64,000 nucleotides of DNA from Rebecca billardiae RCC1528 (GCA_965240325.2 OZ251231.1:1984001-2048000), one strand, 5' to 3'. Shown: positions 3,332 to 54,309, counted from the stretch's first letter. A program made the numbers and translations. The notes: generated by a model from the sequence alone, not told the origin.

Positions 3332-5152
3332 TAGGCTTCATGGCACTGCTGTCACTATTAATAGTCGGTCAGGGTAGTCGTCTGAGTTATAAGATGGAAC
3401 AGTGGATCATATATATATGTATATATACATATATATATATATGTATATATATTGATGATGAACTTATCTTTGGTAAGTTGCCACTGCCAGTGTTGCCACG
3501 CCGACTTAATTAAGATGACCTTGGATACTCTATGATCTCGAGGCTCGAGCGCCGGATAGTGGAAAGGAGCGGGTACTTTACTACTTACAGAGGAGCCAGT
3601 GTGGTTGGCCGATATGAAAGGACCCGAGCCGGCCGCCATGATGATGATAAAGGTAGCTCAGTGGCCGATGAGCTGCTCCGGAAATCGACTGCAATTACCT
3701 GCAGGACCTAGAAAGAAGACCGGATGGCGCGGCCCTTGTCCACCAGCTGCGCGTCGCCTTTCCAACCTCCCGACACACTCGGTTATGACCGCCGGTTCCG
3801 CGGTCCTTTTCCGTAGAACGAACGTAGTTCGGGGCCCGCGGTGGCGGTGCACCCTCCGTCGCAGTCGTCCCGTACGTAACTAGACTCCATCCAGCGGCGC
3901 GCCGCCCAGCGCCGCGCCGCCGCCGGCCCGGCCGGCCGGCCGGGCGCGGGCGCGTCGGCGGCTGGCATGCGCCGAGTGTGGATGTCGGTCGTCGGCCGAG
4001 CTGACCTCATCACAGACGGTCCTTACCTGACCCCCTGCGCGTGCGCGACGGCCGACAGGCGGATGCGACTCGGCGTGATCGACGCACGAGCGCGACTCTT
4101 GCACGACAGGCCACCGGCGGAGCTGACTGACAGACAGGGAGCCGACGGCGCGGGACCGCGGATTCGACTTCGTTCGGGCCTGCCGCTCACCGTCGTCGCC
4201 GCGACGCCAGCAGCGCAGGAGTAGATGATCTGCAGGTCAGTAGGGTTCGACCTGCGCGCCTGCGCGACGGCCGACAGGCGGGCGCGAGGCGTGAGCGACT
4301 CATGAGCGCGACTCTACGTGCACACCAGGCCCACGCGGCCGAGCTGACTGACCGAGCCAGGGAGCACGGTGCGAGCAGCCATGCAGCACCGGTGCTTGCA
4401 CGCGCCGCGCGTGCACGGGGTGACACACCTCGGTCAGGCTCGGCACGCGTCGTAGAGGCACGGCCAGCTCTGGGCACGCCAGGCGCCCAGGCCACGCGGA
4501 GCTGACAGCCACTGGGAGCCGACGGCGCGGGGCCGCGGCCAGTTCGACTTGCGCCTGCTCTGAAGAAGAGTTCTGGGAGACCCTGGCGGAGAGGCATGGC
4601 AAGGGGGGCGTGTGGTGAAGTCGGAGACTCAGAGATCGATCAGTCCGGCATCATGCGCCGCTGCCCCCGAGCTTGCGAGAGCCCGAACACAGGGCGGCGG
4701 CTGCGGCGGCGGCTCGCGGCCGCGCGGCCGGCCGCGCAGGCATCGACAGGGCGCGGCAGGGGCGTGCGGAGTGAGTAGTGAGCGGGCACGAACGCGATGT
4801 CGACGGCCGTCGGGACCCGCCGCAGACGCGCGCTCCAGGCGCCACTCGGCACTCGCCACGCGCACCTGCCCATCGATCGCCCCCTTGGACCGTTGTCCGT
4901 TGGACGCCGAGAGTCGTCGCGGCTCGCTCGCCACCCCCGAACGCATCACGGCTCAAAACCTGCACACGTCCTTGCGACGGCGGCAGGTTTTGAGCTCGCC
5001 CGCTCGGTAAGTCAGTGACTATGGAATGGGCTGGCAACGAATAGCAGTGCGGGTATTTTCAATAAGGCTTGCGGGTTTAGTAGACTCTAGATACCAACCG
5101 CCGCGAAGCCAAGTTCGTATTCATCAAGGTGGAGGCAAACTATCATTCTCCC

Positions 5153-5300
5153 GATGGCTCATTGATGAATACCAGTTGTCACGAAGCGGTGGATTCGTTC
5201 TCCTGATGGATCATTGATGAATACCAGTTGTCACGAAGCGGTGGATTCGTTCTCCTGATGCGGTGGATTCGTTCTCCTGATGGCTCATTGATGAATACCA
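5153..5300. repeat. ~52-bp tandem repeat (about 2.5-3 copies)
   Basis: GATGG(C/A)TCATTGATGAATACCAGTTGTCACGAAGCGGTGGATTCGTTCTCCT is repeated. Confidence 0.85.
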
Positions 5301-5424
5301 ATTTGTGAGATGGCGACGATCAGGTTACGAAGCGGTCGTACGCGGGCTTGCTCAAAACCTACCGACGGGACGGCTGGTAGGTTTTGAGCTCGGCGACTAT
5401 GAAATGGGCGGGCAACGAATAGCT

Positions 5425-6318
5425 GACCCGTTGCAAGGGCGGTACCGCCCTTGCCCGTTGCAAGCGTGAGCGCCGAAAAAACGACACTTCTGCGGCCTAG
5501 AGTTACGACGATAGATAGTCATGCCGGCGGCGGCGGCGGCGGCGGGAGCGTAACAGTGCGTCTACCATCACCTTCCGTTTAGCGCGCTACGCCGCGCGTG
5601 CCGGGTAGTGCCCCCGGCCCGCCGCAGCAGCAGTCGACAAGTAGTGAAGAGACGATGACCGCGGACGCAGTGCCGCAGTACAGCCTGCATCCACTTTGAC
5701 AGCGCGGCGCGCACTGTAGTTGCACTTGCAGCGCTCGCGCTCAGCGAGCATGGGCGTGCGCTCAGGCGTGTCAAGTGCTGTGTCGTCGGCGCGCTTTCGC
5801 CTGCCACCTCGCGCACCCGTGCACGCAGCTTCATCGTCTTCATGAGGACTGCTGTGCTGCTGTCGCCATCACCCGAGTCCGCGGTCGCGCGGCGCGCGCG
5901 GTGGCAGCTGTGCACCGCAGAGTGTCACCGCTGCTGCTTCGCAGCAGTCGTCAGCAGTTGCGTCGTCATCCTCCTCGTCGTCGGCTTCCACTGCCGCAAG
6001 AGGGAACGCTGCCAAAGCTGCAGTTGGGAGGCAAGCCCTTCTCTCTTCCCACCGCGGCGCGCGCGTTGTGACAGCCCTCCCCGTTTGGCTTCTCTTGACC
6101 ACCTGCTGAGGGTTTTGCAGCTCGATCTCGGCAACGGCACCACCTGGCGACGAACGGATTGGATTGTGCACGGGGAATTGGATTCCCCGTGCACCAATCC
6201 GCTCGGTTCGTCGCGCCTGGCCGCCATCGCCCAGCGCTAGTTGCAAAACCGTATTTTCACCGGTACGTCGCATTTTTATCACCGCCCTACCTACGGTCAC
6301 TCACCCGTGCAACGGGTC
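5425..6318. mobile_element. Non-autonomous TIR element nested in X1, apparent 4-bp AGCT TSD
   Basis: AGCT|GACCCGTTGCA...TGCAACGGGTC|AGCT. It interrupts a motif (CAACGAATAGC..TGCGGGTATTTTCAAT) that is intact at ~5036-5063. Confidence 0.7.
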
Positions 6319-6625
6319 AGCTGCGGGTATTTTTCAATGTCTCGCACTAATTGGAGTTGGTGAGAGTCGTTCTTGCGGCGGCGAGGCCATATTTATTTAC
6401 TATGGTCACACATGAACGACTGAGTCCACCCGTAAGTAATTACTCACCCCGTCGGACACTTGGTTGGGCGTGGGTTTCGTTGATTCCTCTGTTCACTATT
6501 CAAGACGGCGGCCGCGTCCTTTTTCGACGCAGAATGCACCTGTAAGGGAGTCTCAATTCTCAAAATCGAAACTCGGTCTCGGCTCCAGCCGCCTGGAAAA
6601 CACCGCCCCGTCCCTTTTTCTTTTA

Positions 6626-8574
6626 CCAGGTCGTTCCCCGTGCACTGGGAATCCGCGGTTTCGCCCTATTCAGAGCGCGAGGCCGCGGCATAGCAACGCA
6701 GATTTAGTCTTCCGCTTCGTCTATCAGACCACTTGAACGATCTAATCGAGCTTTCCAATTGAAAATGACGAAACTAGATCCATCCATTGGAGAAGCCAAA
6801 TCCCGAGCGCGGCAAAGCCGTGGAACGCAGTAATCAGCCTCGTCAGCGATAGTCCGCTCACGAAATCGATGCGCTGGAAATGAGTTCTTCGTGTGCAACC
6901 TGGAGGCGGGAGCCCTCCGCCGCGGGTGCGGAGCACCGATTCTGACCCGCCCCCTGCGGCTGCGGCCGGGCACGAGTGCGATGCCGCTGGCCCCGGCTGG
7001 GGGGCGCGCCCGGGCCAGGGCACTGCGGGCGCGGATGTGCTCGCGGAGCCGGCGTGCGTGGACGGGCTGTTGCGGGAGAGTATCTGCCGCCCTCCTGCGC
7101 CGTGCGACTTGCGCCACGCCTCTTTCGCCTCGGCTCAGGGCAGCGCACACGCGCGCGCCGCCTCCGAAGGCCAGCCTTGCCTGCGCCGCAGCCGGTCGCG
7201 CGCGCGCCGTGCGCGGCGTGGTCGGGAAGGAACGGGGGGTGCTGCCGGGCGAGATGGCGACATCATGTGCGCACGCCATGCCGCCGCGCCACGCCTTGCC
7301 GAGCGTGTCGCCGGTCCGTTTGCACGCCTCTTCCAGTTGTCACAAATGGTGTCAGGTGTGCCGCACGGCCTCGCGGTCGTGACCGCTGGGGGGCGCGCCC
7401 GGGCCAGGGCGCTGCGGGCGCGGATGTGCTTGCGGAGCCGGCGTGCGTGGACGGGCTGTTGCGGGAGAGTATCTGCCGCCCTCCTGCGCCGCGCGACTTG
7501 CGCCACGCCTCTTTCGCCTCGGCTCAGGGCAGCGCGCACGCGCGCGCGCCGCCTCAAGGCCAGCCTTGCCTGCGCTGCAGCCGACCGCGCGCGCGCCGTG
7601 CGCGGCGTGGTCGGGAAGGAACGGGCGCGGCTGCCGGGCGAGATGGCGATATCATGTGCGCACGCCATGCCGCCCCGCCACGCCTTGCCGAGCGTGTCGC
7701 CGGTCCGTTTGCACGCCTCTTCGAGTTGTCACAAATGGTGTGCACGCGGCCTCGCGGTCGTGACCGCCTTGTCGGGACGATCATTGAGACACAGAACAGT
7801 GCCAGACGGGCACGCGGGAAACTCTTACATGAATGTTCATCACTGCGTGGTCATGTAGAAGTGCTGGGTGCGACGCTTTCCTCGCGCGGATGCACTTTCA
7901 TCATCTTCTTCGAGCTCAGGTCTGGCTTCAGGCACGACAAGAAAGCAGCACTCGTCAACAGCTGTGCGGATCCGTTATCGTGCCCTTTCGCGGCGCCGCG
8001 GGGCGGCATGGCGTGCGCACATGATGTCGTCATCTCGCCCGGCAGCACCCCCCGTTCCTTCCCGACCACGCCGCGCACGGCGCGCGCGCGGTTGGCTGCG
8101 GCGCGGCAGTGCTCGGGCCTCGAGGCGGCGCGCGCGTGCGCGCTGCCCTGAGCCGCGGCGAAAAGAGGCGTGGCGCGAGACGCGCGGCGCAGGAGGGCGC
8201 CAGATACTCTCCCGCGACAGCCTGTCCACGCAAGCCGGCTCCGCGAGCACATCCGCGCCCGCAGCGCCGTGCGGCGTGCCCCGGGCGCGCCCCGCCAACG
8301 GCGCTCGGCCGCCTTGCCGCTGCCCGCCTGCCGCCGAGGGCAAAAGGTCAAGATTTGGTCGGCCCTCGCCTGCCGAGCCGCCACCGGGGGCTCCGCCCTG
8401 CCTTCTATCTCGTTGCGGCTCAATTTTGGGATTGCGAGACCAGCTCATCGATTGACGCACATCCGCACCCGCGAGACCTGAAAATCTTATTCGCGGGTAG
8501 CGACGGGTGCGTCCTGCGGCTGTTTTTCTCGTATGTCCAAACCGCGGATTCCCAGTGCAGGGGGAACGACCTGG
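6626..8574. mobile_element. TA-flanked TIR element (~36-bp TIR) nested in the 5' end of X1
   Basis: TA|CCAGGTCGTTCCCCGTGCACTGGGAATCCGCGGTTT...AAACCGCGGATTCCCAGTGCAGGGGGAACGACCTGG|TA. The uninterrupted equivalent site is in X3 (~34921-34950). It holds an internal ~385-bp direct duplication (~6996-7766) and an inverted copy (~8005-8295). Confidence 0.85.
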
Positions 8575-8685
8575 TAGATCAAAGATCTTTATTTTGAAAC
8601 GTGGTCGGTGGTTAGTGCCCGCGTCGCGGGCTCCACGCTGCGCGTTCCGCCCTGCACCGCGGGCCATAACTCCGTTATAACGCCA

Positions 8686-11269
<2,584 letters not shown>

Positions 11270-12870
11270 TGATCGGCTACGCCGATCTTCGGGTAGTGAA
11301 CAACGAAGTTGAGGGCGCACGGCCCTAGTTGTGTCTACTAGTTCGGTCGTCGCGTTCCGTTTGACACGATGACGAATCACGCACTGTCATCATCACTGTG
11401 AGTCAAGTGCTCGTGAGCGGACAGACGTACGTGAGCGGTCGTGAGCCGAGCCGCAGCTCCAGATGACTAACTACGCCGGTATTGCCGCGACCGCCTCGGG
11501 CTCGGCTCCGAGATCTCACGCCCATCGAGTTCTCGCATCTGTTCCACGCGAGGCGGTCGGACGTGCGCCCGTCGGACGGTCGCTTCGCGTGCCGAGTCAC
11601 CTCCTTGTGCGCGTCGTACAGCACCGACAGCGTCGCGCACACTGGTGGCGAGCGCCTGCGCACACGTACTTCGACAAGTACATCGCCACCGCCTCGCCCG
11701 CGGCGCCCGCGCCGATGCAGTACGGGACTTCGTTCGAGCGGACGCACGAGCTCAGCGCCACGTTGTAGTCGGTGATGAGCCCGTTGCGGCAGGCCACGTC
11801 GCGCGAGGCCCACAGCTCGAGCAGTTGGCGCAGCTGCGCGATTCGCGTCTCCGTCCGGGCCGCCTGCTGCAGCTTGTGGAACACGCAGTCGCGCTCTCGC
11901 GCGTGGAGGGCGGACCTGCGCGTATGCGCCCGCCGCGCGTGCCGCTTCATCCGCTGGCACCGCACGCGAGCCACTCGTCGTTCACAGTGCAGCTCGATTG
12001 CCCGCTCCGCGCCGGTGGCACCGCGGAGCCGGCGCCCACGCCTCGCGCTCTTGCTCCGAGCTGAGGCGGTGCGTGTCGCCCGAGTCGGCGGGTTGCGGGG
12101 TTCGTGCGCGCGCGCGTCTTGGGCAGCCTCGCGCGTGCGCCCGCCGCGCGCCCCGCGTCGCTCGCTGGCGCCGCACGCGAGCCGCTCGTCACCGGCGACC
12201 GACCCTGGCGACCGAGAGGTCAAGCATCGCGCACACACGGTCAGCCTTGATGGACGCACCCGTGCAGCCGGAAGGCAGCATCAGCCTGCCCAAGACGTGA
12301 GCATCCAGCCCCGACGCCGCGTCCGGTGCCTGAATGGCGCGCGCTTCTTTCACGCGGGAATGTGCTCACTACATCACTATCCAGAAGGGCGCATGTCAGT
12401 GCTTTTCATGCTCACACGACCCTCGCCGTAGGTCGATGCCAACCGCTGCGTGATGCTCGATCATGCCCGTTTTGACGGCTGTGTGACCCGTGCAGATGCG
12501 CATGCCAGGCAGCGTACTGTTACGAGTGATGACGCGTGCATAAAGTATACCTGGACATTGCCCAGTTCAACCGCAAGTGCCGGACGCCGACGCCGCTGCT
12601 CGCAGCACGCGTGCAGTCAGCCGAGGAATGCACACGACTTCCTTGTTGTTGCGGCGCACGCGATGGCCTGAGGCGCGGCGGATGCAGTGACTCCGAACGG
12701 CGAGCGGCAGAACAACGCAAATGGGCGAATGGCTGCTCTTCAGCCGCGCTCAACCACGCGCACCGCCTTCGCGGGCACTCAACTACCGGCAGGAGGGCGC
12801 GCAGTCGGCGCCCATCTCGCCCTCCGGCGCCCCCCAGCGCGCTGTCAGAGTGCAGCCGCCAGCGGCAGAG
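11270..12870 (-). mobile_element. Helitron-like element, family Y copy 1 (3' end only; upper boundary approximate)
   Basis: Terminal hairpin GATCGGC-TAC-GCCGATC, then TTCGGGTAGTGAACAACGAAGTTGAGGGCGCACGG. It matches the ends at 19884 and 50421 and contains the Rep remnant. Confidence 0.7.
11480..12000 (-). pseudogene. Frameshifted Helitron Rep (HUH Y2) domain remnant
   Basis: RNGLITDYNVALSSCVRSNEVPYCIGAGAAGEAVAMYLSKYV resembles the Helitron/Helentron Rep C-terminal block (N.YN..L....R.N.D...I.SG..A....YxxKY). It continues in another frame as ATLSVLYDAHKEV. Confidence 0.7.
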
Positions 12871-12877
12871 GTTGGTG

Positions 12878-15536
12878 CCGGCCCGGGGAACTTACAGTCA
12901 GACGCTCTGAATCGGCCCCCTCGCTCAGAGCGCTCTGAGCGAGGGGCCGATTCAGAGGGTTTTCCGCCCGCCCCACTGGCGAGCGCGGTGCGGGACGCAC
13001 ATCGCACTGGGGCGGTGCTCAGCACTGCACTCACGGCGCGCCGCGATGTGTTCGGGCGGTGGACGGGGCTGAATCGGCCGAGAGTGACGGTGCGATGGGC
13101 CGTGGTGACTCTGCCATCACCCAGTGATCTCGTGCGGTGCCAGCTCGCCCTTCGCTTCGTCGCCACTCGCACTCGCACCAGTCGCGTGCGCCCATGGCTT
13201 GCCTTTCGCGCGCTGTGTTCCCGCGCAGTGTGTGCTTGGCAGCAGGGTGCTGGTGGCCGGTGGTTGCCGGCGCGGAGGAACGAAATGTTCGCAGCTACGC
13301 TACATCCCAGACGCTATGTGCCCGTCCTCGTCGAGCGATGGACAGACACGCGTGTCGCGCATGCGCTCGCGGAAGCAGGCTGCACAGCGGCGCGCGGGCC
13401 TGGCTGCACGCGCAGGACAAGCTGCACCACACAGCTGCCCCCGCCATGAGCCCCAGCTGCGTACGCACACCTCTTCCGTGTTGTCTGATCCGCCAGGCCG
13501 ACACCGCGCGGAGACTGCGTGAGACACCGACAGTCAGCGGCCACGGCGCACACCGGTCACTGGCACATGCGGCGGCGCGCAGCAGCTGATGCAGCCGTTG
13601 CTTCGATTGATGAAACAGCAACAGCGCCGGTGGCAGTCGCCCCATCGCTGCCGCTGGCACACCCGCACTTGCTGACATATCGCCAACAGCACTCGCAGCC
13701 CTTGCACCTCCGGCAGCTGTGGCTCGACGATCGGCTGAGCGGCGGCAATCTGAGGACACTGTCGTCCGAGCAGCCGCGCGGGAAGGTGCTTCGGGGGGTC
13801 GCTGTCGCGGGAGTCCTGCTCCAAGCAGCTGCTGCAGATGCTGCGGCTGGGACAGCAACTGTTGTGGCTCGCGTTGGCAGCTTCAACGCAGCCGTACCAG
13901 CGTTATGAGGGGAGATGACTTGCTGTGGATTGGGATTTTATGCAGCCTCTTTTTACATTCCGCCTTGCAGGGATTTTAAATTTAAAAAATCCAGCTTGAG
14001 CAGAGTCCGAGACTTGGCGTTTGCAGAAGCTGTGCAGCAGGGCTCAACTCGTCACCGCGTACAGCGTCGGCGCTCGGAGCCTTAGGAGGAGTTCGTACCC
14101 GCCGGGCGTGGTGGGCGTGTCCCGCCCGGCGCGCAGCTTAGCGCTGTACGTGGGCGAGACAGCCCCTTCCGCGTCTGGCACTTCGGCGGCGGTGCCGATG
14201 GTGGAGGCCGCTCGCCGCGCGCGCCTGACGGCAGCACCTCAAGCAGCGCTGACCCATGCGCATGCGGACGGGTGCGGCAATGGCGGTGGGTTTCGCAACA
14301 TGCACAGCGTCAGACGCTCGGCACCAGGTCCGCTCAGCTGCAGCAATAGCACCATCGGTGCGGCGCCTGGCGCTCAGTGGGCGGCGTGTCGGGCGGATGC
14401 AGATGCACTTGCCGTCTGAATCAGGACGCCGGGCATGCGTGCCGAAGCAGTTCGCCCCAGCGCGCGCACTCGCAGAGTGAGAACGGCCGCCCTGCCGGCC
14501 GGAGGCCAATGCACTCGCCTGGCGGCTGCCGGCGCACGGTAGGCCAGGGCAAACGTAAAGCACCCGAAAGCACCACGGCGGTGGTGACCGAGCTCACTAC
14601 CACGGGCGGTGGCGCGGCCGATGTCGCGAGCGTGAGCGCAAGCGTGGCCGTGAGCAATGCGAGCAGCGCGAGGGAGGCGTGGCGCGGTCGCGCCCGCCCT
14701 TCCGACGAGGAACGAGGGCTTTCTTGCGCGAGGGGTCCCCAACGGCAGGTTGCAGCGATGTCGCGCCATCGCTTAGCGCACCGACGTTGCCAGCCGGTCG
14801 ACGTGGCCATCGCTTCCGAGAGAAAGCTGTAAGCCAGATTGCTGCCGCACGCAACCGTGTGCGCTGTGGCCGCTGACTGTTGGTGTCTCACGCACGCAGT
14901 CTCCGCACCGTGTCGGCCTGGCGGATCAGACAACAAGGAAGAGGTGTGCGTACGCAGCTGGGGCTCATGGCGGGGGCAGCTGTGTGGTGCAGCTTGTCCT
15001 GCGCGTGCAGCCAGGCCCGCGCGCCGCTGTGCAGCCTGCTTCCGCGAGCGCATGCGCGACACGCGTGTCTGTCCATCGCTCGACGAGGACGGGCACATAG
15101 CGTCTGGGATGTAGCGTAGCTGCGAACATTTCGTTCCTCCGCGCCGGCAACCACCGGCCACCAGCACCCTGCTGCCAAGCACACACTGCGCGGGAACACA
15201 GCGCGCGAAAGGCAAGCCATGGGCGCACGCGACTGGTGCGAGTGCGAGTGGCGACGAAGCGAAGGGCGAGCTGGCACCGCACGAGATCACTGGGTGATGG
15301 CAGAGTCACCACGGCCCATCGCACCGTCACTCTCGGCCGATTCAGCCCCGTCCACCGCCCGAACACATCGCGGCGCGCCGTGAGTGCAGTGCTGAGCACC
15401 GCCCCAGTGCGATGTGCGTCCCGCACCGCGCTCGCCAGTGGGGCGGGCGGAAAACCCTCTGAATCGGCCCCTCGCTCAGAGCGCTCTGAGCGAGGGGGCT
15501 GATTCAGAGCGTCTGACTGTAAGTTCCCCGGTGCCG
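12878..15536. repeat. ~670-bp inverted repeat pair (about 12878-13555 and 14855-15536) around a 1.3-kb spacer; possible long-TIR element
   Basis: The same peptides appear on opposite strands (13124 + vs 15290 -; 13137 + vs 15277 -). Each arm has a near-perfect ~53-bp palindrome centred on CAGAGCGCTCTG. No TSD found. Confidence 0.85.
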
Positions 15537-17778
15537 GCCTCATGATGATGATCAGGCCGGCAGCAACTTATTCGGAAAAGAAAAGGGAAAAGTACCGTTG
15601 GTGGCACTTCGCCGAAAATTTGGTACGGTTGGTGGCGGGTACCGTTGGTGGCACTCCAGCCCAAATTTGGGCCCGTTGGCAGTGGCAGTCGGCCGTGCGG
15701 CCGAAAACTTTCGCGCCTTCGCCGCGCGCGAGAAGGCCGGCGAGCAGGCCGGCACGCTGCGTTGGACGTGCGCGGCTCGCGCGCACGCGCGAGTGCAGGC
15801 CGTGTGTCAGTGGGCGCAGACTCAGCACGGCCGTGCACGCCATGTCGCGTGCCGCCGCCGTGCATGGCGCTCGCACAGCGCCACCATCGCGCCGTCACAT
15901 GCGAAAGCAGGGCGGCGGCGCGGCGCGGTGGTGGCGCGCGCCGGGTTGCGCGCACCGCCTCGTGGCAGTGTACGCGGTGGGTGGCGACGCGCGTGGCCCT
16001 TGCGAGGCGCGCAGCCGCGCGCTCCGTGAACGCGCCGCAATTGCGCGCGCGCACGGCCGTGCTGCGGCGCTGCGGCCCCACAGGGCTGTGCGCATTGCGT
16101 AATGGTGGCGGTGATGCGCGGCTCGGCGGGCGACAGCGCGCGTGGCCCGCGCGGGGCGCGCAGCCGTGCGCCCCGTGGACGCGCCGCCGTCGCGCGGCGC
16201 GCGCGCGGCCGCGCCGCGGCGCGTGCTCGCAATGGTGGGCCGGCCACGCATGCGCGTGTGCGTGCGTCGCGCATCAGCGCCAGAGCGCGCCGCCGGCGCG
16301 CGCAGGGCTGCGCGCACCACGTCAAGTGGTGCCCGCATGGCGGTGGTGATGCGCGGCGCGGCGGGAGACAGCGCGCGTGGCCCGTGTGAGGCGCGCAGCT
16401 GCACGTCCCGCAGAAGCGCCGCCATTGTGTGGGGCGCGCGCGGTGCGCACTCCGCCCAACGCGGTGCGCGCAGCCCGGCCCGCACTGGCGCCGCGGCGCG
16501 GCCGTGCGCGCGCCGTGCGATGGCGATGCGCACGCGCAATGGCGGTGCTCCCGCTGGGCGCGCGGCTGCGCGTGGCTGCGAGCCGCGCGCGGGCCACGCG
16601 CGCTGTCGCCCACCGCACCGCGCATCACCACCGCCACGCGGGCACCACTTGACGCGGTGCGCGCACCCCTGTGCGCGCCGGCGCGAGCGCACCACAATTG
16701 CATGCGGTTAGTGCGGGCCGGGCTGCGCGCACCGCGCTGGGCGGTTCCCGTCTCTTGGACGTAGTGCGCGGCGACAGCGCGCGTGGCCCCGCGGGGTGCG
16801 CAGCTGCGCGCCTCGCTGACGCGCTGCTATTGGCAGTGCGCGGCCGCAACGTAGTGGCGCCGGCTCGCGCTGATGGCCTGCGCACACCACGCGGTGTGCC
16901 GGCGCCTGTGCCGACGCCTCCGCCACCGGTGCCGCTGCGCTCCGCGCAGCTGCTGCCACCATCAGCTCAATCCACCACATCCGCCACCGCCACCGCCGTC
17001 GTTGCAGCCGCCCCCGCCGCCCCCGCCTCCGCCGCCTCGCTGCGAGCCGCAGCTGCTGCCACCCTGACTCACCTGAGCTCCACCACCGCCGCAGCCGGTG
17101 CCCCGGTGCCGCCGCAGCCACCCGCCGCGCAGCGGCTGCCAATTTCAGCCTCAGCCACCGCCTTAGCCGGTGCAGCCGCCGCCGCCACCGCCGCCGTCAC
17201 CCCCGCCCCCGTCCCCGCCGAGCGGCGCCGAGCGGCTGCTGCTGCCATCCTGAGCGCCGCCACCGCCGCCAATGGTGCCGCAGGTGCCGCCGTCGCCACG
17301 CGCAGCGCAGCGGCTGCCACCCTCAGCCACCACCTCAGCCGGTGCCGACGCCACCGCCACTACCGCCGCGCCGCTGCAGTCAGTGCCGCTGCCGCCGCGT
17401 GCCGCGAGGCAGCCCCCGTCCTCAACCTCCGTCACAGCAGCAGCAGCCACTTCAGCTGTACCGCCGCCGCCGCCGCCGTTGCACGCAGCACTGCTGCCAC
17501 CACAACTGCAGCTTGCAGCACCTGCTGATGGCTGCTCTGCAGGTCCAGCTGGCACGACTGCAGGCCGTTCAGCAGCGAATCGCTTAGACTCGGGGTCGCT
17601 GCTGTCCAGGAACTTCATCAGGCTGCTGGTGCTGTTGCCCACTGATGAGTCGTGGATGGTGAGATACACCAGAGGCCCATTTTGACCACATGCTCACCGC
17701 TGCTGGTGCGCAATCGCCATCGTCTGAGTACAGTGCCCTCAACAATTGACGATTAACCTTATTGTGTTTGACTGTTTA

Positions 17779-19884
17779 TGGCGCACGCCCCCCCCCCCCC
17801 GAAAGGTCTGAGCGTGAGCGAAAGCCGGGGGGGGGGGGGGGGGGGGCGGCGCACGTGCTCCGCAAAATCAAAAAGAGGATGCGCGCAGGATTTTGGGGAT
17901 TTTTCGGTAGGTGGCCACCGCGTATGAGTGGATATCGCTGCCGCAATGATTGCGTTTGTACTGCCCCTTAATTTTAACGATAGTAACACTTAGGGGAATG
18001 CAGAGTGGAATAGCACATAACACCAGCCGTGTGTTAGAACATTCCGTCATAGTAACAGATGCCTGAATTGTAAGAGCCTGAAACAGCTCGCCAACCATAG
18101 AAACGATAGGTTGGGTCGTCAGCTTTGATTCACGCGCTTCTGAAAAACAGCGTTTTAGATTAGACGCATCCCTCTTCTCTTAAGAGAACTGCGCTTCAAA
18201 AACACCGTTTCAACGAAAGACGATCGCCCGCCATTCAACTGAAACGAGATTCTGCATAAAGCGAACCAAACATTTGGTTCGGTGGCAATCCAATTCTTGT
18301 ATTTCAGATGAACGACACAGCCTGAAGGCGAACATTCTCGCTCTCGACCCATATGATCATTTGTTGATGAGGCCTGAATTCGCTCATCAACAATGATGGC
18401 AGCGACGCGATATGGTATTGCGCGGGTAGCTTGAATCGACGTTCCCGCGCGCCCTGGTTCATACGGTTATCAAGGTGGTAAAGTTTTATAATGGTACGAG
18501 CTAACGAACCGTCATTTCTGGGCTCTCTGCCTATCTCATCTCTGTCCGTTTTTGGACGGTTGTCGCCTTAATCACATACATATGCAAGTGCAAAGTTAAA
18601 TCATAGTAAACTGTAGTACGGGGTTCAGAGTGCGCAGCAGTGCAAGGTCGGGTTGCGAGGCGGCGCGGGGCTTGAGCCGTCGCAGAGCCTCCCCAGCCCG
18701 GATGGGATGGCCGTGTGTGTGCGCGAGCGCCCGCCTCGCGTCGCGCGCCCCGCGCGCAGAGCGCGCGCTCGGCCGCGCGCGACGCGGCGGAGTCGAGGCT
18801 GACGTATGCCCCTACGCAGGTTCACGGACCATAGGCTGCTCGTCATTCGTCCCGCGAACCGGCAGCGGGCAGCATCAGGCTCAACTTCCCAGTCGTCGCG
18901 GCTGACGACTTCACTCACGGACTTGGCAATCAATCCTTGATCGCGGTCCTTCAGCTGCGAGCGCCCGGCGCCACCGTGCCCGGCACCGGCTGGCTGCCGA
19001 CGACAGCGACCTGAGACGGCCGGACGGTGGTGCATGCTGCTCATTGCCGCGTCCGAATGTACGTGATGCAGAGCGCGTCACGGCCGGTCGTTCTATACGC
19101 GATAGAATTAGATCCGGCGCACTAGCCTAGGGCCGCACCGCCGGCCACCGGGTGTTCATCGTTGCCATTGGGCCCGGCGGTGCGGCGCGCGGCACCGGCC
19201 GGCGGTCCACTGCTGACACTCGTTCCGTCACGGCAGCTTCTAGGAAGCCAGTCGCGTGGGCATAGCGCGCCTCTCTGCCCGCGCGGCATGTGGGTGGGAT
19301 GATGTCAGGCTGCCGGATGTGACTGGCTTGGACCACTGACCAGGCTGCGGGAGCATGTCGCTGATGCATTCCAGAAGACTTCTCAGGGGAACCAGACGAT
19401 GACGGCACTCGTCGTGATCAGTCGAGTCGTCAAGTGATAATGACGCCAGAATCGTCGCGCCACGTGCCGGCACCGTTAGAAGGGCAGATGAACAACTCGC
19501 GCGTAGTCCCGCTGAGAGCGTATGTATGTACGGTATGGCTGCGGCTGCAACGCGCAGTCGTCTGACGCAGTCATCACTCGACGGATGCCTGACTGCCTGA
19601 CCGACGAGACGAGCCACAGGCTTAGATCTGCGAGCGGCGAGTCTGCACTCTCTGCGACGATGGCGAGGTGGCATAATAACATATGCTAGCCGCAGCTAGG
19701 CGGGCGACGCCGTGCTCCCCTCTCAGTCTAACCCGTGCTCGCAGTCGCCCTCGTGTACGGCGACGCGCCGGGCGCGCGCGCAACGTGATTCAGCAGTCGT
19801 GAAGAACGCGCGCGACAACTAGATACCAGGGCCGTGCGCCCTCAACTTCGTTGTTTACTACCCGAAGATCGGCGTAGCCGATCA
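17779..19884 (+). mobile_element. Helitron-like element, family Y copy 2 (both ends present)
   Basis: 5' end TA|TGGCGCACGCC. Subterminal inverse CGTGCGCC at 19833-19840. 3' hairpin GATCGGCGTAGCCGATCA|TA. The first ~680 bp match the reverse complement of 53760-54309. Confidence 0.8.
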
Positions 19885-33425: not shown

Positions 33426-35015
33426 AGGACCGCGTTCCGCGGTCCTTTTCCGTAGAACGAACGTAGTTCAGGGCCCGCGGTGGCGGTGCACCCTCCGTCG
33501 CAGTCGTCTATTGACAGACCAGTTGCATATGCCCGTACAACTAGACTCCAGCGGCGCGCCGCCGCCCGCCGCGCCGGGCGGGCCCATTGCAGCCGCCGGC
33601 GCGGCGCCGATTGTGTACAGGCGGATGCGACGAGGCGTGATCGACGCATGAGCGCGACTCCACGTGCACGCCAGGCCACGCGGAGCTGACAGCCAGGGAG
33701 CACGGTGCGGGGCCGCGGATTCGTTCGGGCCGCTGCTGCTGACCGCTGTCCCCGGGGTCACCCCCCGCGCCGGCAGCGCCCGGGATGATGCACTGGTCCG
33801 AGTAGGGTTCGACCAGCGCCTGCGCGACGGCCGACAGGCGGGCGCGAGGCGTGATCGACGCATGAGCGCAACTCTACGTGCACGCCAGGCCACGCGGAGC
33901 TGACAGCCCGAGGGAGCACGGTGCCGAGGTGCGAGGGCACCGGTGATCCGGTTCGCGCACTCGCCGCGCGTGCACGGGCAGCTGACACACCTCGATCAGG
34001 CTCGGCACGCGTTGCAGAGGCACGGCCAGCTCTGGGGACGTCACGCACCACCGTCGCCCGCGCAGCTCGTCCTCCTCGTAGAGTACCGTTCAGTTCCGAG
34101 GCGTAGCCCTCGCTCAGAGTCGACCGACGATGGACTCGGATCGTCGGCGCGCCTGCTCTCTCTCAAGAAGAGTTCTGGGAGACCCCGGAAAGGCATGGCA
34201 AGGGCGGCGCGTGGTGAAGTCGAAGGCTCAGAGATCGATCAGTCCGGCATCAGGCGCCGCTGCCCCCGAGCTTGCGAGAGCCCGAACACAGGGCGGCGGC
34301 TGCGGCGCCGGCTCGCGGACGCGCCGGGGCCGCGCAAGGCCGCGCCGAGGCATCGACAGGGCGGCAGGGGCGGCGGGGGCGCGCGGAGTGAGCGGGGGCA
34401 CGAACGCGATGTCGACGGCAGTCGGGACCCGCCGCAGCCGCGCGCTCCAGGCGCAACTCGCCGCGCGCACCTGCCCATCGCCGTCCTCACCCGTCGGTCG
34501 CTCGTGAGCCTCGTGCCCGTGGCTCGCCTCCAAACGCGGGCCGCCTTTGGTGGGCCGCCGCCCGGGGCCGCGCGCGCGCCCAACCAAGTCCGTTCGCGTC
34601 AGATAGTATTGAGATACGCCGAGCTTGGGCCCTCTGCTACTGACCCTTGCCTTGTCGGCTCCTGATACAGATAGGGCGCGATTGAATAGTTGATCAACTG
34701 ATTCAAGGGACGTACATTGTCACATCGGTTCGCGGCAATCTCACTATCAAACTAAATCGCTCGTAACGAACCGTTACGTTAAAGTCACGGCCGCTCACGT
34801 CCCGTCCATCGATTGAATAGGGGAATCTCGTGGACGCGGTTATTTCTCCGTAATGCATGTGTCGTAGAGAGGGTCTCAAAAATCGAAACTCGGTCTCCGC
34901 CAGCCCTAAAAATCGCCCCCCGTCCCTTTTTTCTTGATCAAAGATCTTTTTGAAACGTGGTTAGGGCCCACGGAGCGGGCTCCACGCTGCGCGTTCCGCC
35001 CTGCACCGCGGGCCA
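33426..35015 (-). mobile_element. Helitron-like element, family X copy 3 (no nested insertions)
   Basis: GGACCGCG-TTC-CGCGGTCC hairpin and TGCACCGCGGGCCA|TA end. The interior is homologous to about 3790-4930. Confidence 0.8.

Positions 35016-41407: not shown

Positions 41408-41478
<71 letters not shown>
41408..41478. repeat. (TA)n microsatellite
   Basis: Read directly from the sequence. Confidence 0.98.
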
Positions 41479-41480
<2 letters not shown>

Positions 41481-48896: not shown

Positions 48897-50283
48897 ATGG
48901 AGCGACGCGCAGACGCGGAGCGCCCGGCGCTGAGCGCATTCGGCCGGGCGAGCGCGCCGAACCAGATCATGTCGCTCATCACGCCATTCGTCGGTGTCGA
49001 CGACGTCGCCCACCTCGCCCAGGGCGCGCCCCCGCCCTCTGTGTTTCCGATCACGGGTCTACAGCTTGAGCTTGCGGATGGGAACGTCGTGCGCGTCGGT
49101 GCCGAAGCCATGGCGAGCGCGCAGCAGTATCAGTACGCGCGCTCGGGGTACGCGCCGTTGACGGCGTGGTGCAGGTGCGCGCCTTCTGCGCGCCCCTCCC
49201 TGTCTTGCTCGCTTGCCTCCACAGGCTCATGCATGCGTCGCGCACGCTGTGCGCCGCAGGGACTTTACGGCTAAGCACCACCGCGTTCGTGGCGGTTGGG
49301 AGGTAGCGCTGCACGCTGGCGCAACAGACGCCATCTCCAAGCTGACCGAGGTGCTCTGCGACCCGGGCGACCTCGTGCTGTGCGAGGCGTACACGTGGTC
49401 GACCGCACTCGATGGCATGCGCATGCGTGGGGTGTGCCTCGCGGGCGTCGAGGTGGACGGCGACGGGATGGTGCCCGCCGCGCTTGAGCGCGAGATCGCT
49501 CGCGCTCAAGCCGCCAAGCAGGCAATCAAGGCCCTCTACATCGTGCCCAACGGCTCCAACCCGTGCGGCACCACGCTCGCGCCCGAGCGGTTTGCGCAGA
49601 TCTACGCGCTGTGCTCTGCGCACGGCATCCTGGTGATGGAGGACGACCCGTACTGGTGGCTGGGGCTGGGCGGCGCGAAGGAGCCGCTCCCCGGGCCGCG
49701 AACGTCATTCGCCTCGATCGACGCCGACTTGAACGTCGTGCGCATCGACTCCTTCGCCAAGAGCGTCGCGCCGGGCTTCCGGCTCGGCTGGCTCTCGGGG
49801 CCGCCGCGCGTCGTGCACGCGTTCAACGCCGCCAACTCCACCGCCACGCTCAATGGTACGCCATTCGCGATGGTGGCGCTGCACGCGCTGCTCGAGCACT
49901 GGGGCGAGGCGGGGCTGTACGCGCATATCGAGCGCACGCGTGCGGAGTACAGGCGGCGTCTGGACGCGGTGCTCCGCGTGGCTGAGGAGCGGCTGGCCGG
50001 CCTCGCCAGCTGGAGCGCGCCCAAGGCAGGGATGTTCCTCTTCCTCGACCTCTCGCCCTCGGGGGTGCAGGACTCGACCAAGCTGATGCCCAAGCTGCGC
50101 GAACACCGCGTGCTCACCATCCCCTCTGCCGTGTTCTCGCCGAGCGGCGCGCCGTCGCCGCACATGCGCATTTCTTTCTCCCAAGCTAGCGACGACGACA
50201 TTGCCAAGGGCATCAGCCGGCTGGCCGATCTGCTCAGTTGTCACAGTCATCATCACGACAGTGACGAGCAGCAGACAGTGTAG
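48897..50283 (+). CDS. PLP-dependent class I aminotransferase (2-aminoadipate/kynurenine/aromatic, Aro8/LysN-like); exons 48897-49174 and 49260-50283
   Basis: Motifs QY..SGY..L, VPNGSNPCG, MEDDPY, DSFAKSVAPGFRLGW (PLP Lys), PKAGMFL and MRISFS. Confidence 0.92.
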
Positions 50284-50420
50284 TGTGTCGTGTTGATGTG
50301 ACTGATCAGCAGCAATCAGTCATCAGCAGAATCATCATCAGCAGCGCGCGCGCGCATATCATATCGCGTAGTAGCTAGTACGACTTAGTATAGTAATAAT
50401 ATAGTAGTTCGTATTATTTA

Positions 50421-53400
50421 TGATCGGCTACGCCGATCTTCGGGTAGTAAACAACGAAGTTGAGGGCGCACGGCCCGATAGTGGCTGCTAGTTGTCGCGT
50501 TCTTTCTTCGTCACGAATCACGCAGCTTGTGAGCAGCAGCCGGCTTGTGATAGCCTGGTCCATCTCGATTTTCGCCAGTGTAAAAGCCTTTTTCGGATTT
50601 TGGGCGCCTCATTTCTCCCGATTTTTCTCGTTGCTCGTCGCGCTCGTCAAAAATCGCCACCGGCCGTCCGACGGCTCGCCGCGACGAAGGTCGGAAGGGG
50701 CTCGAGAGCCTCGACTGGACGACTGCGCCGCCTCATGTCAGGTGTAGTGCTGGACACATCGTTCGGGTGCCCCGGTGGTGTGCGTGCACACCTTGAGCGA
50801 CATGTCTGCGTTGCTTCCGCCGCCCGCGGTCCGTCGCCAGGTCGACTTCTTGCCCGACGGCGTGCGTCGAACGCTCACCTGCTGGGTTGCGCCGCGCCTT
50901 CGAGACGGGCCACCTCGGGTAATATGCGGGCCACGCGACGGCTCGTGTCGGCCACCGCCTACCCCTAGCATGTATTCGATGCCACCACCAGCGTTGGGCG
51001 CGCTGCGCATCGCCAACGCTTCATCCGGCCAGTCCCGTCACGTTCGCGCATGGGTCGTCCTGAGCGGCGGCTGTCGATTTGTGCTCCTCGTGGAGCTGTA
51101 TGACGGGCTGGTGGCGAGCAGGATGGCTCGCCTTGCGGGGCTGGGTGTGTACAGTCGCAGTGTGGTGGCTGCCGGCTGACTCCCATCGCATGGGTGCTGC
51201 TTTACCGTCATGGCCTTTGCTGCGAGCACAAGGTCGAGGATCGTACCGCGGTCTGCGAGGCAGAGTCGACGGAGTCGTCGCTTGAAGATGGTTGAGAGCG
51301 CTCATACGTCTTCCTTGGTGCCGTGCAGCTACTCCAGCACGCAAGGCTTGCGCTCTGGCGCCTGTTTGGTGTCCATGGGTGGCACATTGTGCCATTCGGG
51401 TGGCTCGGAAGCACGTGCTCGGGTGTCTTTCCCGTTTACGCGCGGTGGGCCATGTCACCACGCACGGCCAGAGCATGTCATGGCACGCGGAGGGTGCCCA
51501 TGAACGATCCCCACCCCGGTGGTGGCCGTAGGCGCACTCAAAGCGGTCGCATCGTCACCCGCGGATCACATCAGTCCGCCGTTGAGGCTGTCGGGCGAGC
51601 AAAGACGTGCGATCTGACCCTTGGACGGGCAGCTAGAATCGCGATTATGCCTCATCTAAGGACGCACATGTCGTCGTTGTAGGCAGTACTGATGCCCCAA
51701 GTGAAAGGGCGGGCGTGGCACGCGACTTGACAGCTTGAATGACTCGATGCACGCCGCCATGGACACGCGAACCGGATCCGTTGCGAACCTGCCGTGTGGC
51801 TCACGGCGGCGCGCGTTGTGCCGCATATCGGCCAGTCGCCACGCAGGAGATGGTCTCCAGACCAGGTCCAGCACCTGACCGACTGCCGCACGCCTGGCCG
51901 GGTGGGAGTCCGGCCCTCTTCTTGTCTGCAGGAGTGCGCGGAAGGCCAGGCGGAGCCTCTTCCGACCAATGCACCCCGCGCGCCGCACTAATCGTGCAGC
52001 CTGGGACAGCTACCCACCTATGGCGAATATGTAACGACATAGTGGCATTGTAATTATACAGGTCCAGACCGCGTATTTATGCGGGTACACTGCCCATACT
52101 ATGCGGGTACAAATGGGTAATATTGTCGATCTTGCAGTAGTTGAGTACGGCCACTTGCGCACAGACCACAGCCCATCCTAATGGCCTGTACCAAGGTTCA
52201 TGCTCGCCTCGACGTACGCCAATAAGTAAGTTCGTGCGTTTGGGCTCATTTCGGTTAAGTACTTACCCACCTTCAGACTGACGATTCTCTATGTGTCCGT
52301 AGTTGTCCGCGGCGCGCGCGCGCACGCTCACGACGGGCCGCGGATGCGATTTTTAGGCCGAAACTTTTGCTCCGCCCGGGCTGGGCCCATTTGTTACGCT
52401 GTTTCCGGGTGTGAGCGCGTGCCTAGGGGCCCGCATTCATTTGGCGATAAAATCCCCGAAAGTGCTCCAGTGCGTTTGGACCAGGCTACTTGTGACGACA
52501 CGGTCGGACGGTCGGACGGGTGCATGCGCCGAATGCAGCCGAGTCACTGGCGAGTCCGACAGCCGGGCGGCGGCGCCGGGGGTGCACGCGAGCTCGCACG
52601 CGCGTTGTGTGCGCAGCCGCGCTGCGCGCAGAGCAGCCACTCAGCGCCGCGCCCGACCACTACGCGAGAAGCCGCTGCGCCGCGCGCAGCGGCAGCAGCG
52701 GCGCCTCCGCAGCGCGCGCCGAGCCGCCGCCTCCCGCCCGTCCCGCCTCGGCCGCGGCCGCGGCGCGCGAGCGACTTGCGGCTTGCGGCGGCGGCGGGCA
52801 GCGGCGGCGCGGCGAGCGCGCACAGCGGCCCCTCGAGCGTGCGGCCGAGCGCCGCCGCGTACGTCGGGTCGCGCGCCGCGCGCCATCGCCCACACGGCCG
52901 CGGCCCAGTGCGCCGCGCCGTCCGCCACGAGGCGCGGTGCACGGTGGTGCACACATTTTGGAGGCGCGCGCCGTCGAGGCGCGGGACGGGCGGGAGGGCG
53001 GACGGGGGCGGGGGGAGCGGCGGCGGCGGCGGCGGCGCGTTGCGCGAGCCGCAGCGTACGCCCGCGCCGATCTTGAATGATGAATCTCGACGGCGGCGGC
53101 CGTGGCGACGCGTGCGCGCGCGTCGACCAACGGCGGCGCGGCCTCTGCGACGGCGGCACGGTGCGGCGGGGGCAGCGGCGGCGCGACGGCGTCGGCGGTG
53201 GCGCGCTCGCACAGCGTCTGCCGCCCGCGCGCGCCGCCGTCGTCGCCGTCGTCGCCGCGACGGAGGGCGTGCGCGCGAGGTCGGCGGCGGTGTGCGCGGC
53301 GGCGCTGGGCGAGTGCGCCAGCCTCTCGGGCAGCACACGCCCCGCCGCGCGCCCGCCGCCGCCCAGGCTCCCGCGCCCGGCCGCGCGCCGCGCCGCCGCG

Positions 53401-54309
53401 CGCGCGCAGAGGCCGCGCGCGACGATCGGCTCGTACTCGTCGTGTTTTGCGCGAGCCGGCCGGCGCAACGTGACGCCTCGCGATCTGAATCGTCACGCGT
53501 CAGGACACTACTGGTAGTCTTATTTTCAGAGAGCTCCTATAATGATTGCAGATGGATCATAACGTCGAATCACACCCGCATTTGGCTTTGAATCAATTCG
53601 TCGTACTTGAAGCGGTAGAAATTCTTATGCTCATGAGATTTTGGGCTCGTCAATGCGGGTGGCAATCCATTCTTGCAATCCAAGAAGGATTGCCACCCGC
53701 ATTGACGTCGTATCAACAGATGACCAAAAGTATATCAACAACAGTAGCTTGCTAACCGTATGATACCAGGGCGCGCGGGAAGGTCGATTCAAGCTACCCG
53801 CGCAATACCATATCGCGTCGCTTTGATGAATCTGATGAGTGAACAGCTCTCGTTTCAGTTGAATGGCGGGCGATCGTCTTTCGTTGAAACGGTGTTTTTG
53901 AAGCGCAGTTCTCTTATAAGAGAAGAGGGATGCGTCTAATCTAAAACGCTGTTTTTCAGAAGCGCGTGAATCAAAGCTGACGACCCAACCTATCGTTTCT
54001 ATGGTTGGCGAGCTGTTTCAGGCTCTTACAATTCAGGCATCTTACTATGACGGAATGTTCTAACACACGGCTGGTGTTATGTGCTATTCCACCCTGCATT
54101 CCCCTAAGTGTTACTATCGTTAAAATTAAGGGGCAGTACAAACGCAATCATTGCGGCAGCGATATCCACTCATACGCGGTGGCCACCTACCGAAAAATCC
54201 CCAAAATCCTGCGCGCATCCTCTTTTTGATTTTGCGGAGCACGTGCGCCGCCCCCCCCCCCGGCTTTCGCTCACGCTCAGACCTTTCGGGGGGGGGGGGG
54301 CGTGCGCCA
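50421..54309 (-). mobile_element. Helitron-like element, family Y copy 3 (both ends present)
   Basis: TA|TGATCGGCTACGCCGATC hairpin end and CGTGCGCCA|TA other end. Homologous to the 5' region of Y2. Confidence 0.8.
51040..51990 (-). pseudogene. Possible heavily decayed Pif1-type helicase remnant
   Basis: Fragments in the expected order across different frames: ISCVATGRYAA (Ia-like), DPVRVSM..LSSRV (II-like), RPFTWGIS (III-like) and VIQLHEEHK..DDP (IV-like). Confidence 0.35.

Follow-up and report, generated by a model that had tools for sequence, protein, structure and literature searches.

Organization of the elements

The window, that is the whole 64-kb stretch of Rebecca billardiae DNA analysed here, contains six copies of transposable elements belonging to two families, X1-X3 and Y1-Y3 (Table 1). 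Profile searches with nhmmer detect exactly six 3' ends (E 1e-13 to 6e-17) and exactly five matching 5' ends (E 8e-25 to 1e-38) in the 64 kb, and nothing else. The sense orientation of five of the six copies is on the minus strand; Y2 alone is on the plus strand. The boundaries are sharp at the six 3' and five 5' ends, and the interiors are unrelated or only partly related. Five copies are non-autonomous, and Y1 is probably what is left, on the 3' side, of a once autonomous element, for which no Y-type 5' end is found anywhere in the window, the nhmmer profile included. The copy number, the two families and the positions of the termini given in the initial annotation are confirmed by this search and by re-reading of the ends.

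The interior of X1 is comprised in part of a 389-bp tandem repeat and an inverted copy of the same repeat. X3 has about 0.9 kb of interior in common with X1 (77% identity), and the ends of the two are 96-99% identical. X2 has in common with X1 and X3 only about 65 nt at the 3' end and about 140 nt at the 5' end. Its 5' end directly adjoins the 3' end of Y1, with zero nucleotides between them. In family Y, the first 476 nt of the 5' ends of Y3 and Y2 are 97% identical. Further Y copies and one extra 5' junction were recovered from Logan contigs aligned to Y3 plus its flanks. Y3 is located 140 bp downstream of an aminotransferase gene.

Table 1. Elements, terminal structures and associated features in the window
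Feature	Position	Strand	Remarks
X1	3786..8666	-	4.9-kb non-autonomous copy; nhmmer 3' end E 1e-13, 5' end E 8e-25
5' terminal hairpin, example X1	8616..8666	-	outer stem formed by the 5' inverted-repeat arm
(CATA)n/(TA)62 microsatellite	8680..8803	.	between X1 5' end and X2 3' end; target tract
X2	8804..11269	-	2.5-kb non-autonomous copy
3' terminal hairpin, example X2	8805..8821	-	stem covariation
Y1 3' terminal region	11270..11383	-	hairpin 11271-11287, conserved spacer, 3' inverted-repeat arm
RepHel relic inside Y1	11660..11911	-	sense orientation of the element; protein homology
Y2	17779..19884	+	2.1-kb non-autonomous copy
X3	33427..35015	-	1.6-kb non-autonomous copy
Y3	50421..54309	-	3.9-kb non-autonomous copy
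Other 3' terminal hairpins	3787-3805, 11271-11287, 19867-19883, 33428-33444, 50422-50438		

Terminal structures and covariation

Both families have the architecture described initially, in which TGG and a short motif form the start, the inverse of the motif recurs inside the 3' end and a 7-bp hairpin is terminal. In sense orientation, family X starts with TGGCCCGCGGTGCA and terminates in GACCGCG-GAA-CGCGGTC-A, and family Y starts with TGGCGCACG and terminates in GATCGGC-GTA-GCCGATC-A. The first base is a T, and the 5' inverted-repeat arm begins at nucleotide 2. The partner arm ends about 43 nt from the 3' end and is followed by a conserved spacer of 25 nt and the terminal hairpin, which consists of a 7-bp stem with a GNA loop and is located one base from the end, the last base being A. 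The X1 hairpin is spoiled by a 2-nt insertion. The final base of X3 is C, not A (nor T, as had been annotated); it lengthens the stem to 8 bp, and the X3 end is 33427 or 33426.

The X arms are complementary over 13 of 13 nt, and the Y arms perfectly over 8 nt and over 11 of 12 nt. The arm motifs differ between X and Y, yet they are complementary inside each family, both arms having changed together. The 3' hairpin displays the same behavior: three of its seven pairs are changed on both sides between X and Y, none is broken, and all 42 of 42 cells are paired (100%). When the partner column is slid by 1-3 positions as a control, pairing falls to 9-45%. The 5' ends of X2, X3, Y2 and Y3 fold like that of X1, and all five folds begin at nucleotide 2-3; the calculated DNA folding energies are -21 to -29 kcal/mol, with modest z-values of -1.5 to -3.3. 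No direct terminal repeats are present at the element ends, and the two termini, TG/CA aside, do not form an inverted repeat.

Flanking sequences and the insertion site

The free ends had been annotated as TA-flanked. This is correct for four of the five 5' flanks and four of the six 3' flanks, but TA is missing at three junctions (X2 5' flank, CA; X3 3' flank, TT; Y1 3' flank, TG). The invariant bases are an A before the element and a T after it, six of six each, a count that includes one extra copy from the Logan contigs. The 30-nt flanks are 43-100% A+T, compared with 33% for the window, and in one instance the target is the (TA)62 tract, in agreement with the TA-rich targets proposed initially. 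Outside microsatellites, AT accounts for 3.2% of positions and TATA for 0.12%; given this background and the flank composition, the A|T pattern is not due to chance. The flank consensus, TTA|TAA, is symmetric about the A|T step, and X1 lies inside GTTA|TAAC.

A T precedes GG in all copies and an A follows TC in five of six; AT stands directly on both sides of the GG...TC core in five of the six. The TA|TA target of the initial annotation is one of four readings of the boundaries, and the sequence data fit all four. The most symmetric one would be insertion of a T...A element at A|T in the absence of target duplication, as in the canonical Helitrons. Alignment of Logan contigs to Y3 plus flanks gave no empty site. 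When an orthologous locus was sought through the neighbouring filamin-repeat gene, the best protein-database match was only 40% identical, which indicates that this genome and its close kin are absent from the protein collection.

A RepHel relic in Y1 and its protein relatives

About 390 nt from the 3' end of Y1, in sense orientation, an 80-residue relic matches the two-tyrosine region of giant metagenomic RepHel proteins (phmmer; 52 matches with E<1e-3, best 4.7e-11). Its GC3 of 0.83 is coding-like, and tblastn finds it as the sole such piece in the window (E 6e-13). The relic retains the motif C.N...N...G.G...MY..KY, with two tyrosines four residues apart, and by this pattern and its position it is a putative catalytic tyrosine motif. 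The long matches carry Helitron_like_N and PIF1. In these relatives, HxH is found at the end of Helitron_like_N, MY..KY 350-700 residues further, and then PIF1. They also carry DUF6570 and UCH domains, plus an RPA gene upstream, all of which are almost exclusive to or typical of HLE2 according to HELIANO (PMC11417382). A permissive scan of the relic against the Pfam Helitron_like_N model gives no match, because the model stops at the HUH motif. Judged by its similarity to these proteins, the relic ties family Y to a Rep/helicase transposase.

An intact RepHel carrying these ends, which the initial annotation had proposed to look for, is absent from the window, the relic in Y1 being what was found; the six copies are decayed, and none encodes a protein. 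A DDE transposase in place of RepHel, named there as contrary evidence, is not seen either: Pfam gives zero matches for the 115 stop-to-stop open reading frames of at least 100 residues inside the six copies. The frame at 9600-10553 (minus strand) in the X2 interior has coding-like GC3 and no homologues. None of the approximately 30 listed related RepHel proteins has an AP-endonuclease (Exo_endo_phos) domain. Searches for ends of the X/Y design around related RepHel genes in four contigs (L004, L005, L015 and L016) returned noise only, a 16-nt match in L004 being judged as chance. Neither the 3' end of Y nor the 5' end of X is matched in pattern scans of metagenome contigs (0 matches), and two viral-contig matches to the X hairpin are chance, with no other element feature present. 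Sequence and profile searches of solved structures with the RepHel region did not match Helraiser, and an AlphaFold model of the HUH-to-tyrosine region (pTM 0.75; tyrosine motif pLDDT <50) has no Foldseek match in the PDB.

Relationship to Helitron2 and other transposons

X and Y are very probably sister families of rolling-circle transposons of the Helitron2 type (HLE2). They clearly exemplify a known kind of element and do not constitute a new class. The Helitron-group assignment with a Helitron2/Helentron end design, made in the initial annotation, is upheld by the ends and the Y1 relic. The "distinct rolling-circle lineage" is not, in view of the Helitron2 structure of the ends, the relatives with DUF6570, UCH and RPA, and the TNAT|A precedent described below. 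The structural criteria of Bao and Jurka 2013 (PMC3627910) are asymmetric inverted arms, a 5' hairpin that uses the 5' arm, and a 3' hairpin. All are present in X and Y: the 5' arm begins at nucleotide 2 (0-2 nt from the end in the definition) and the 3' arm is upstream of the hairpin, the 5' arm takes part in a terminal hairpin at all five 5' ends, and a hairpin terminates the 3' end. An autonomous HLE2 copy encodes a RepHel (a two-tyrosine HUH Rep plus a Pif1-type helicase), of which the window has the 80-residue Y1 relic, homologous to proteins with Helitron_like_N and PIF1. Features of the flanks and ends also count against HLE2. The flanks read ...A|T-element-A|T..., which differs from the T|T or TTTT|T/C targets, free of duplication, reported for HLE2 and gives T|T only if the leading T is host DNA. 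The 3' arm is about 43 nt from the end, with the 25-nt spacer, as compared with the 20-30 nt described.

The Helitron2 elements of Chlamydomonas reinhardtii, also a GC-rich alga (Helitron-1_CRe, Helitron-1N1/1N2_CRe, CRe-1/2/3; PMC3627910), start with T like X and Y; their 5' arm, at 0-2 nt from the terminus, is part of a 5' hairpin, and the partner arm is subterminal, upstream of a 3' terminal hairpin. Their non-autonomous copies have just the ends in common, and, as in the X/Y set, 3' ends are reported to outnumber 5' ends, with some copies truncated on the 5' side but intact at the 3' end. There is zero sequence similarity to X and Y, and the target is TTTT|T/C, versus A|T in TTA|TAA or (TA)n for X and Y as judged by their flanks. 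FoHeli1 and FoHeli2 of Fusarium oxysporum and the Chaetomium elements (Chellapan et al. 2016, PMC5148889) likewise have asymmetric inverted repeats and a GAA-loop hairpin at one end. They insert at TNAT|A, a precedent for an HLE2 target that contains a TA step; the authors note the same ambiguity of the leading T and report neighbouring insertions 2 bp apart, comparable to the close X/Y insertions. The FoHeli1/2 host is a fungus, microsatellite homing is not described, and the termini are confirmed by empty sites, whereas the X/Y termini are known from sequence.

Canonical Helitrons (HLE1; Helraiser and plant Helitrons) insert at A|T without duplication, have a 3' hairpin terminator and variable interiors, and are moved by a two-tyrosine RepHel, a kind of transposase to which family Y is linked through the Y1 relic. 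Unlike X and Y (TGG...TCA), they have 5' TC and 3' CTRR ends, neither inverted arms nor a 5' hairpin, and a 3' hairpin 10-12 nt inside the end. Helentrons and their short derivatives (DINE-1, HINE), of the HLE2 clade, have subterminal inverted repeats and a 3' stem-loop like X and Y, but also a T|T target, T-runs at the 3' end (...GGTCA or ...GATCA in X and Y) and an AP-endonuclease domain in the transposase. Micron, TAFT and MuTAnT (PMC4486113) prefer (TA)n microsatellites and AT-rich islands as well. These elements, which are of the DDE type or unclassified, have conventional terminal inverted repeats and duplicate their target; their mechanism is unrelated.

Alternative interpretations

The same Helitron2-type elements might use the standard HLE2 target, the leading T belonging to the host, the element being GG...TCA and the site TAT|TA (T|T); in a variant, T and A would both be host DNA and the site TNAT|A. 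This is somewhat unlikely, but it has the reported HLE2 and FoHeli1/2 targets (PMC5148889) on its side, together with the T before GG in all copies, the A after TC in five of six, the fit of five of six 5' flanks to TNAT when the T is included, and the 0-2 nt allowed before the 5' arm (PMC3627910). Two observations argue weakly against it: the consensus is symmetric about A|T and not T|T, and X2, where the preceding A is Y1's own last base, would need an atypical TT flank while the other five copies have AT. An empty site would read TTATATAA under TNAT|A and TTATTAA under T|T. It could exclude TA duplication, but would read ...TTATAA... both for A|T insertion of a T...A element and for AT duplication around GG...TC. 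The autonomous partner may also be a giant RepHel that has a protease of the Ulp1/UCH type and DUF6570, and in which a zinc finger is inserted between the HUH and tyrosine motifs; this type is found so far almost only in marine metagenome contigs. That it forms its own deep Helitron-like branch, joining HLE2-style ends, an HLE1-style A|T cut and homing to (TA)n tracts and AT islands, is unlikely. Were it true, the homing would arise because only such DNA melts easily in a 65-79% GC genome, and a single-strand transposase would choose its targets according to DNA melting, not by reading the sequence.

A cut-and-paste DDE transposon that duplicates a 2-bp TA or AT (Tc1/mariner-like or another TG...CA MITE) would account for the TG...CA ends, the palindromic TTATAA consensus and the AT on both sides of the GG...TC core, with which a 2-bp AT duplication is compatible. 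It is very improbable: the termini agree only in TG/CA; the 5' arm is terminal but its partner lies 43 nt inside, and the 43 nt beyond it, covarying hairpin included, are still part of what is copied; no DDE domain is present in the reading frames, Y1 contains a RepHel relic and one copy has a 3' end without a 5' end. Duplication of TA is ruled out by its absence at three junctions. Another HUH transposase, from a Replitron (single-tyrosine Rep, no helicase) or an IS200/IS605-like element, is extremely improbable. Replitrons are known in algae, haptophytes among them, and their right end carries a hairpin (PMC10288648); hairpin-guided single-strand transposition also suits the end design. Short direct repeats at the termini and a Rep with one tyrosine define the Replitrons (PMC10288648); X and Y have inverted arms and lack direct repeats, which rules out a Replitron, and the relic has two tyrosines (Y-x-x-K-Y) and relatives with PIF1.

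Proposed mechanism of transposition

For X and Y as Helitron2-type elements, the observed end anatomy, covariation, RepHel relic and flank composition can be placed in a scheme that follows Helraiser and the model proposed for Helitron2 by Bao and Jurka; the individual catalytic steps, the precise position of the cut and the lack of target duplication are inferred. The first step would be a nick in the sense strand, made at the 5' junction (flank-A|TGG) by a RepHel encoded elsewhere in the genome, whose Pif1-type helicase would then displace this strand 5' to 3'. The reaction would be halted by the 3' signal, comprised of the subterminal arm, the spacer and the terminal GNA hairpin; the subterminal arm could pair with the 5' arm, opening the 5' hairpin. 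The second tyrosine would then cut after ...TCA. The single strand, probably circularised, would be joined into the A|T step of easily melted AT-rich DNA, with TTA|TAA as the likely consensus target and (TA)n tracts included. Insertion would recreate A|T steps at both junctions, which would explain the head-to-tail run Y1-X2-(TA)n-X1.

Significance

X and Y exemplify Helitron2-type elements with cleanly defined boundaries in an alga that is very GC-rich and has been little studied. Natural covariation can be read from them for three signals (the 3' hairpin, the pair of arms and the conserved 25-nt spacer), and these data are useful for defining which signals a Helitron2 transposase reads. The end profiles would allow genome-wide masking and counting of both families. 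The apparent preference for the A|T step, both in sites resembling TTATAA and in (TA)n tracts, would extend the range of targets known for HLE2 and may explain where insertions are permissible in such a GC-rich genome.

Copies and structure of the ends

The observation of two related transposon families, X and Y, is real. All twelve claimed element boundaries were inspected in the sequence, and the boundaries and end design described in the initial annotation proved right once each element was read in its sense direction (minus strand, except for Y2). The last base of X3, reported as T, is C, neither A nor T; the rest of the end description stands. End profiles recovered six 3' ends, five 5' ends and no others in the 64 kb, and the 5' end of Y1 was not found in the window.

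In the sense orientation, X begins with TGGCCCGCGGTGCA and terminates in the hairpin GACCGCG-GAA-CGCGGTC-A, and Y begins with TGGCGCACG and terminates in GATCGGC-GTA-GCCGATC-A. In both families the 5' motif recurs as its reverse complement some 43 nt inside the 3' terminus and is followed by a 25-nt spacer that can be aligned between X and Y (AACT.CGTTG.T..CTAC). The 3' hairpin is completely paired in all six copies; that of X1 contains a 2-nt insertion. Between X and Y three of its seven pairs are changed on both sides and none is broken, compared with a pairing of only 9-45% when the partner is slid by 1-3 columns as a control. The change is a single divergence event and therefore counts as three compensated pairs rather than as a series of independent events. 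The two arms of the inverted repeat, one terminal and one subterminal, differ between X and Y and are complementary inside each family. As single-stranded DNA, each of the five 5' ends forms a hairpin starting at nt 2-3 (z -1.5 to -3.3), the outer stem of which is the 5' arm.

All three X copies carry a 6-7-nt duplication (GCGGTG) in one arm and lack it in the other: X1 and X3 have it in the 3' arm, X2 in the 5' arm. Neither end is therefore consistently 'long' or 'short', a mixture that suggests exchange of ends among copies.

Self-comparison showed common ends within each family, joined to interiors that are unrelated or related only in part. Between X1 and X3, 0.9 kb is common at 77%, with ends 96-99% identical, and X2 has only its ends in common with family X. 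Y2 and Y3 have 476 nt in common at 97% identity. Two pairs of inverted duplications (98-99% identity) lie amid repeats of GC-rich, minisatellite-like sequence (15.9-17.4 kb and 21.2-21.7 kb), and pair 2 brackets Y2 at roughly equal distances (~1.4-1.6 kb). These duplications and repeats may be the reason why the 5' part of Y1 is untraceable.

Coordinates of the elements and other features of the window
Feature	Position	Strand	Remarks
Tandem array	26-3300		1198-bp unit, ~2.7 copies, 99% identity
X1	3786-8666	-	
X1 3' arm	3834-3855		GCGGTG duplication
X2	8804-11269	-	
X2 5' arm	11244-11269		GCGGTG duplication
Y1	3' end at 11270	-	
RepHel relic in Y1	11660-11911	-	phmmer homology to giant RepHel proteins
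Inverted duplication pair 1	12877-13553, 14857-15538		
Inverted duplication pair 2	15585-16193, 21262-21870		
Y2	17779-19884	+	
Filamin-repeat protein gene	23813-29302	-	intronless, >1,300 codons
X3	33427-35015	-	
X3 3' arm	33473-33496		GCGGTG duplication
TPP riboswitch aptamer	39309-39427	+	Rfam RF00059
Perfect (TA)36 tract	41407-41480		
Aminotransferase ORF	ends near 50280		140 bp upstream of Y3
Interval between aminotransferase ORF and Y3	50280-50421		Y3 lies within a short AT-rich island
Y3	50421-54309	-	
WD40-propeller/ion-channel protein gene	55978-60096	-	intronless, >1,300 codons

Coding content and the Y1 relic

None of the 115 ORFs of at least 100 residues inside the copies has a Pfam match, and their codon-position G+C is flat, unlike that of the real genes of the window. 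The only RepHel-like (Rep/helicase transposase) sequence in the window is an 80-residue relic in Y1, which is not recognized by Pfam. Run exhaustively against 1.84 billion representatives, phmmer gave 52 matches at E<1e-3, the best at 4.7e-11, with 40-53% identity over ~60 residues. By this similarity the relic is homologous to RepHel: the long matches are giant RepHel proteins, such as P0013 (DUF6570, Helitron_like_N and PIF1), P0023 (Helitron_like_N, with PIF1 on the next ORF) and P0019 (PIF1, with Peptidase_C48 and DUF6570 on the upstream ORF). The relic has lost none of the invariant residues in the conserved block C.N...N...LGAG..SK..MY..KY. In intact relatives the HxH is the extreme end of the Pfam domain, and the block follows 350-700 residues later, beyond a cysteine/histidine-rich insert; we infer that it is the two-tyrosine Rep motif. 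The reading direction of the relic is towards the hairpin, which by the usual convention identifies the hairpin end as 3'.

No intact RepHel was found between X/Y-type ends, no X/Y-like ends were recognizable on the related metagenomic RepHel contigs, and a structure search gave no solved relative of the RepHel region. The giant RepHel clade (P0013, P0019, P0064-P0071; loci L004, L005, L015, L016) is almost entirely metagenomic. Its proteins have 1,200-2,900 residues, with a Cys/His-rich insert separating the HUH and two-tyrosine motifs, and various members carry Ulp1 (C48), UCH, OTU, zf-PARP or DUF6570 domains. In L015, a Chromo + RPA-OB gene lies upstream of RepHel.

Classification

Bao & Jurka defined Helitron2 by features that are all present in X and Y as well (PMC3627910): the element begins with T, its terminal inverted repeats are asymmetric, and both ends form hairpins, that of the 5' end including the 5' arm. 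The same authors recorded 5'-truncated copies with intact 3' ends, with which Y1 agrees. According to HELIANO, DUF6570 and UCH are nearly exclusive to the Helitron2/Helentron group (HLE2), the RPA genes of which lie upstream of RepHel (PMC11417382). DUF6570, UCH and an upstream RPA gene are all present in the relatives of the relic, and no AP-endonuclease domain was found in the 30 or so related RepHel proteins listed. The ends and, indirectly, these accessory domains together point to Helitron2 rather than Helentron or the canonical Helitrons (HLE1).

Cut-and-paste elements with a DDE transposase are an unlikely alternative, because neither terminus is an inverted repeat of the other, a 43-nt hairpin tail outside the inner arm is copied along with the element, and Y1 contains the RepHel relic. 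Replitrons are the other HUH transposons of eukaryotes that are known from algae. Their termini are direct repeats and their Rep has a single tyrosine (PMC10288648); neither trait was seen in X or Y. The Helitron2 end features and the relic bear out the proposed class of mechanism, the rolling circle. The proposal of a distinct lineage was overstated: X and Y are probably new families of the Helitron2 kind.

Target sites

Counting one additional copy from a loose contig end, A precedes the element in 6/6 cases and T follows it in 6/6; TA precedes it in 4/6 and follows it in 4/6. The flank consensus is TTA|TAA (GTTA|TAAC at X1), and the mean A+T content of the 30-nt flanks is 72%, compared with 33% in the whole window. 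Y1, X2 and X1 are arranged head-to-tail, Y1 and X2 meeting seamlessly, and X2 and X1 flank a (TA)62 tract. The preference for TA-rich targets was thus correctly recognized. The (TA)36 tract has no element inside or adjoining it, so that (TA)n tracts are not saturated with insertions.

Since the elements begin with T and finish with A, four readings of insertion are compatible with the same sequence; no empty site of X/Y elements was found. Insertion of a T...A element into A|T, with TTATAA as the predicted empty site, is only mildly favoured by the symmetry of the consensus and by the A ahead of X2, which is Y1's own last base. A 2-bp duplication of AT around a GG...TC element also fits and predicts the identical empty site. 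Two further readings fit as well: a GG...TCA element inserted into T|T (predicted empty site TTATTAA) and a GG...TC element inserted into TNAT|A, as in Fusarium (predicted empty site TTATATAA). A plain TA duplication, which the initial annotation had named as a refutation, is ruled out by three junctions. The HLE2 targets on record are T|T or TTTT|T/C, beside which the X/Y preference is out of the ordinary, yet precedented by the Fusarium elements (PMC5148889).

Genomic setting

The G+C content of the window is 58-79%, and it contains long, intronless genes of extreme third-position G+C, those for the aminotransferase, the filamin-repeat protein and the WD40-propeller/ion-channel protein (0.89-0.98 in the last two). 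The shadow frames of the last two genes are open for >1,000 codons, so that ORF length alone is no gene evidence in the Rebecca genome. The tandem array, with 57% G+C, is below the rest of the window; it continues past the window start, and each unit contains inverted sub-repeats of 99-102 bp. The TPP riboswitch aptamer scores 63.6 bits (gathering score 54.3, E 4e-10), and the ORFs adjoining it have no Pfam match. AT-rich DNA occurs in the window only as short islands and (TA)n tracts. AT-rich islands beside gene ends, such as that of Y3, may be the usual landing sites of the elements.
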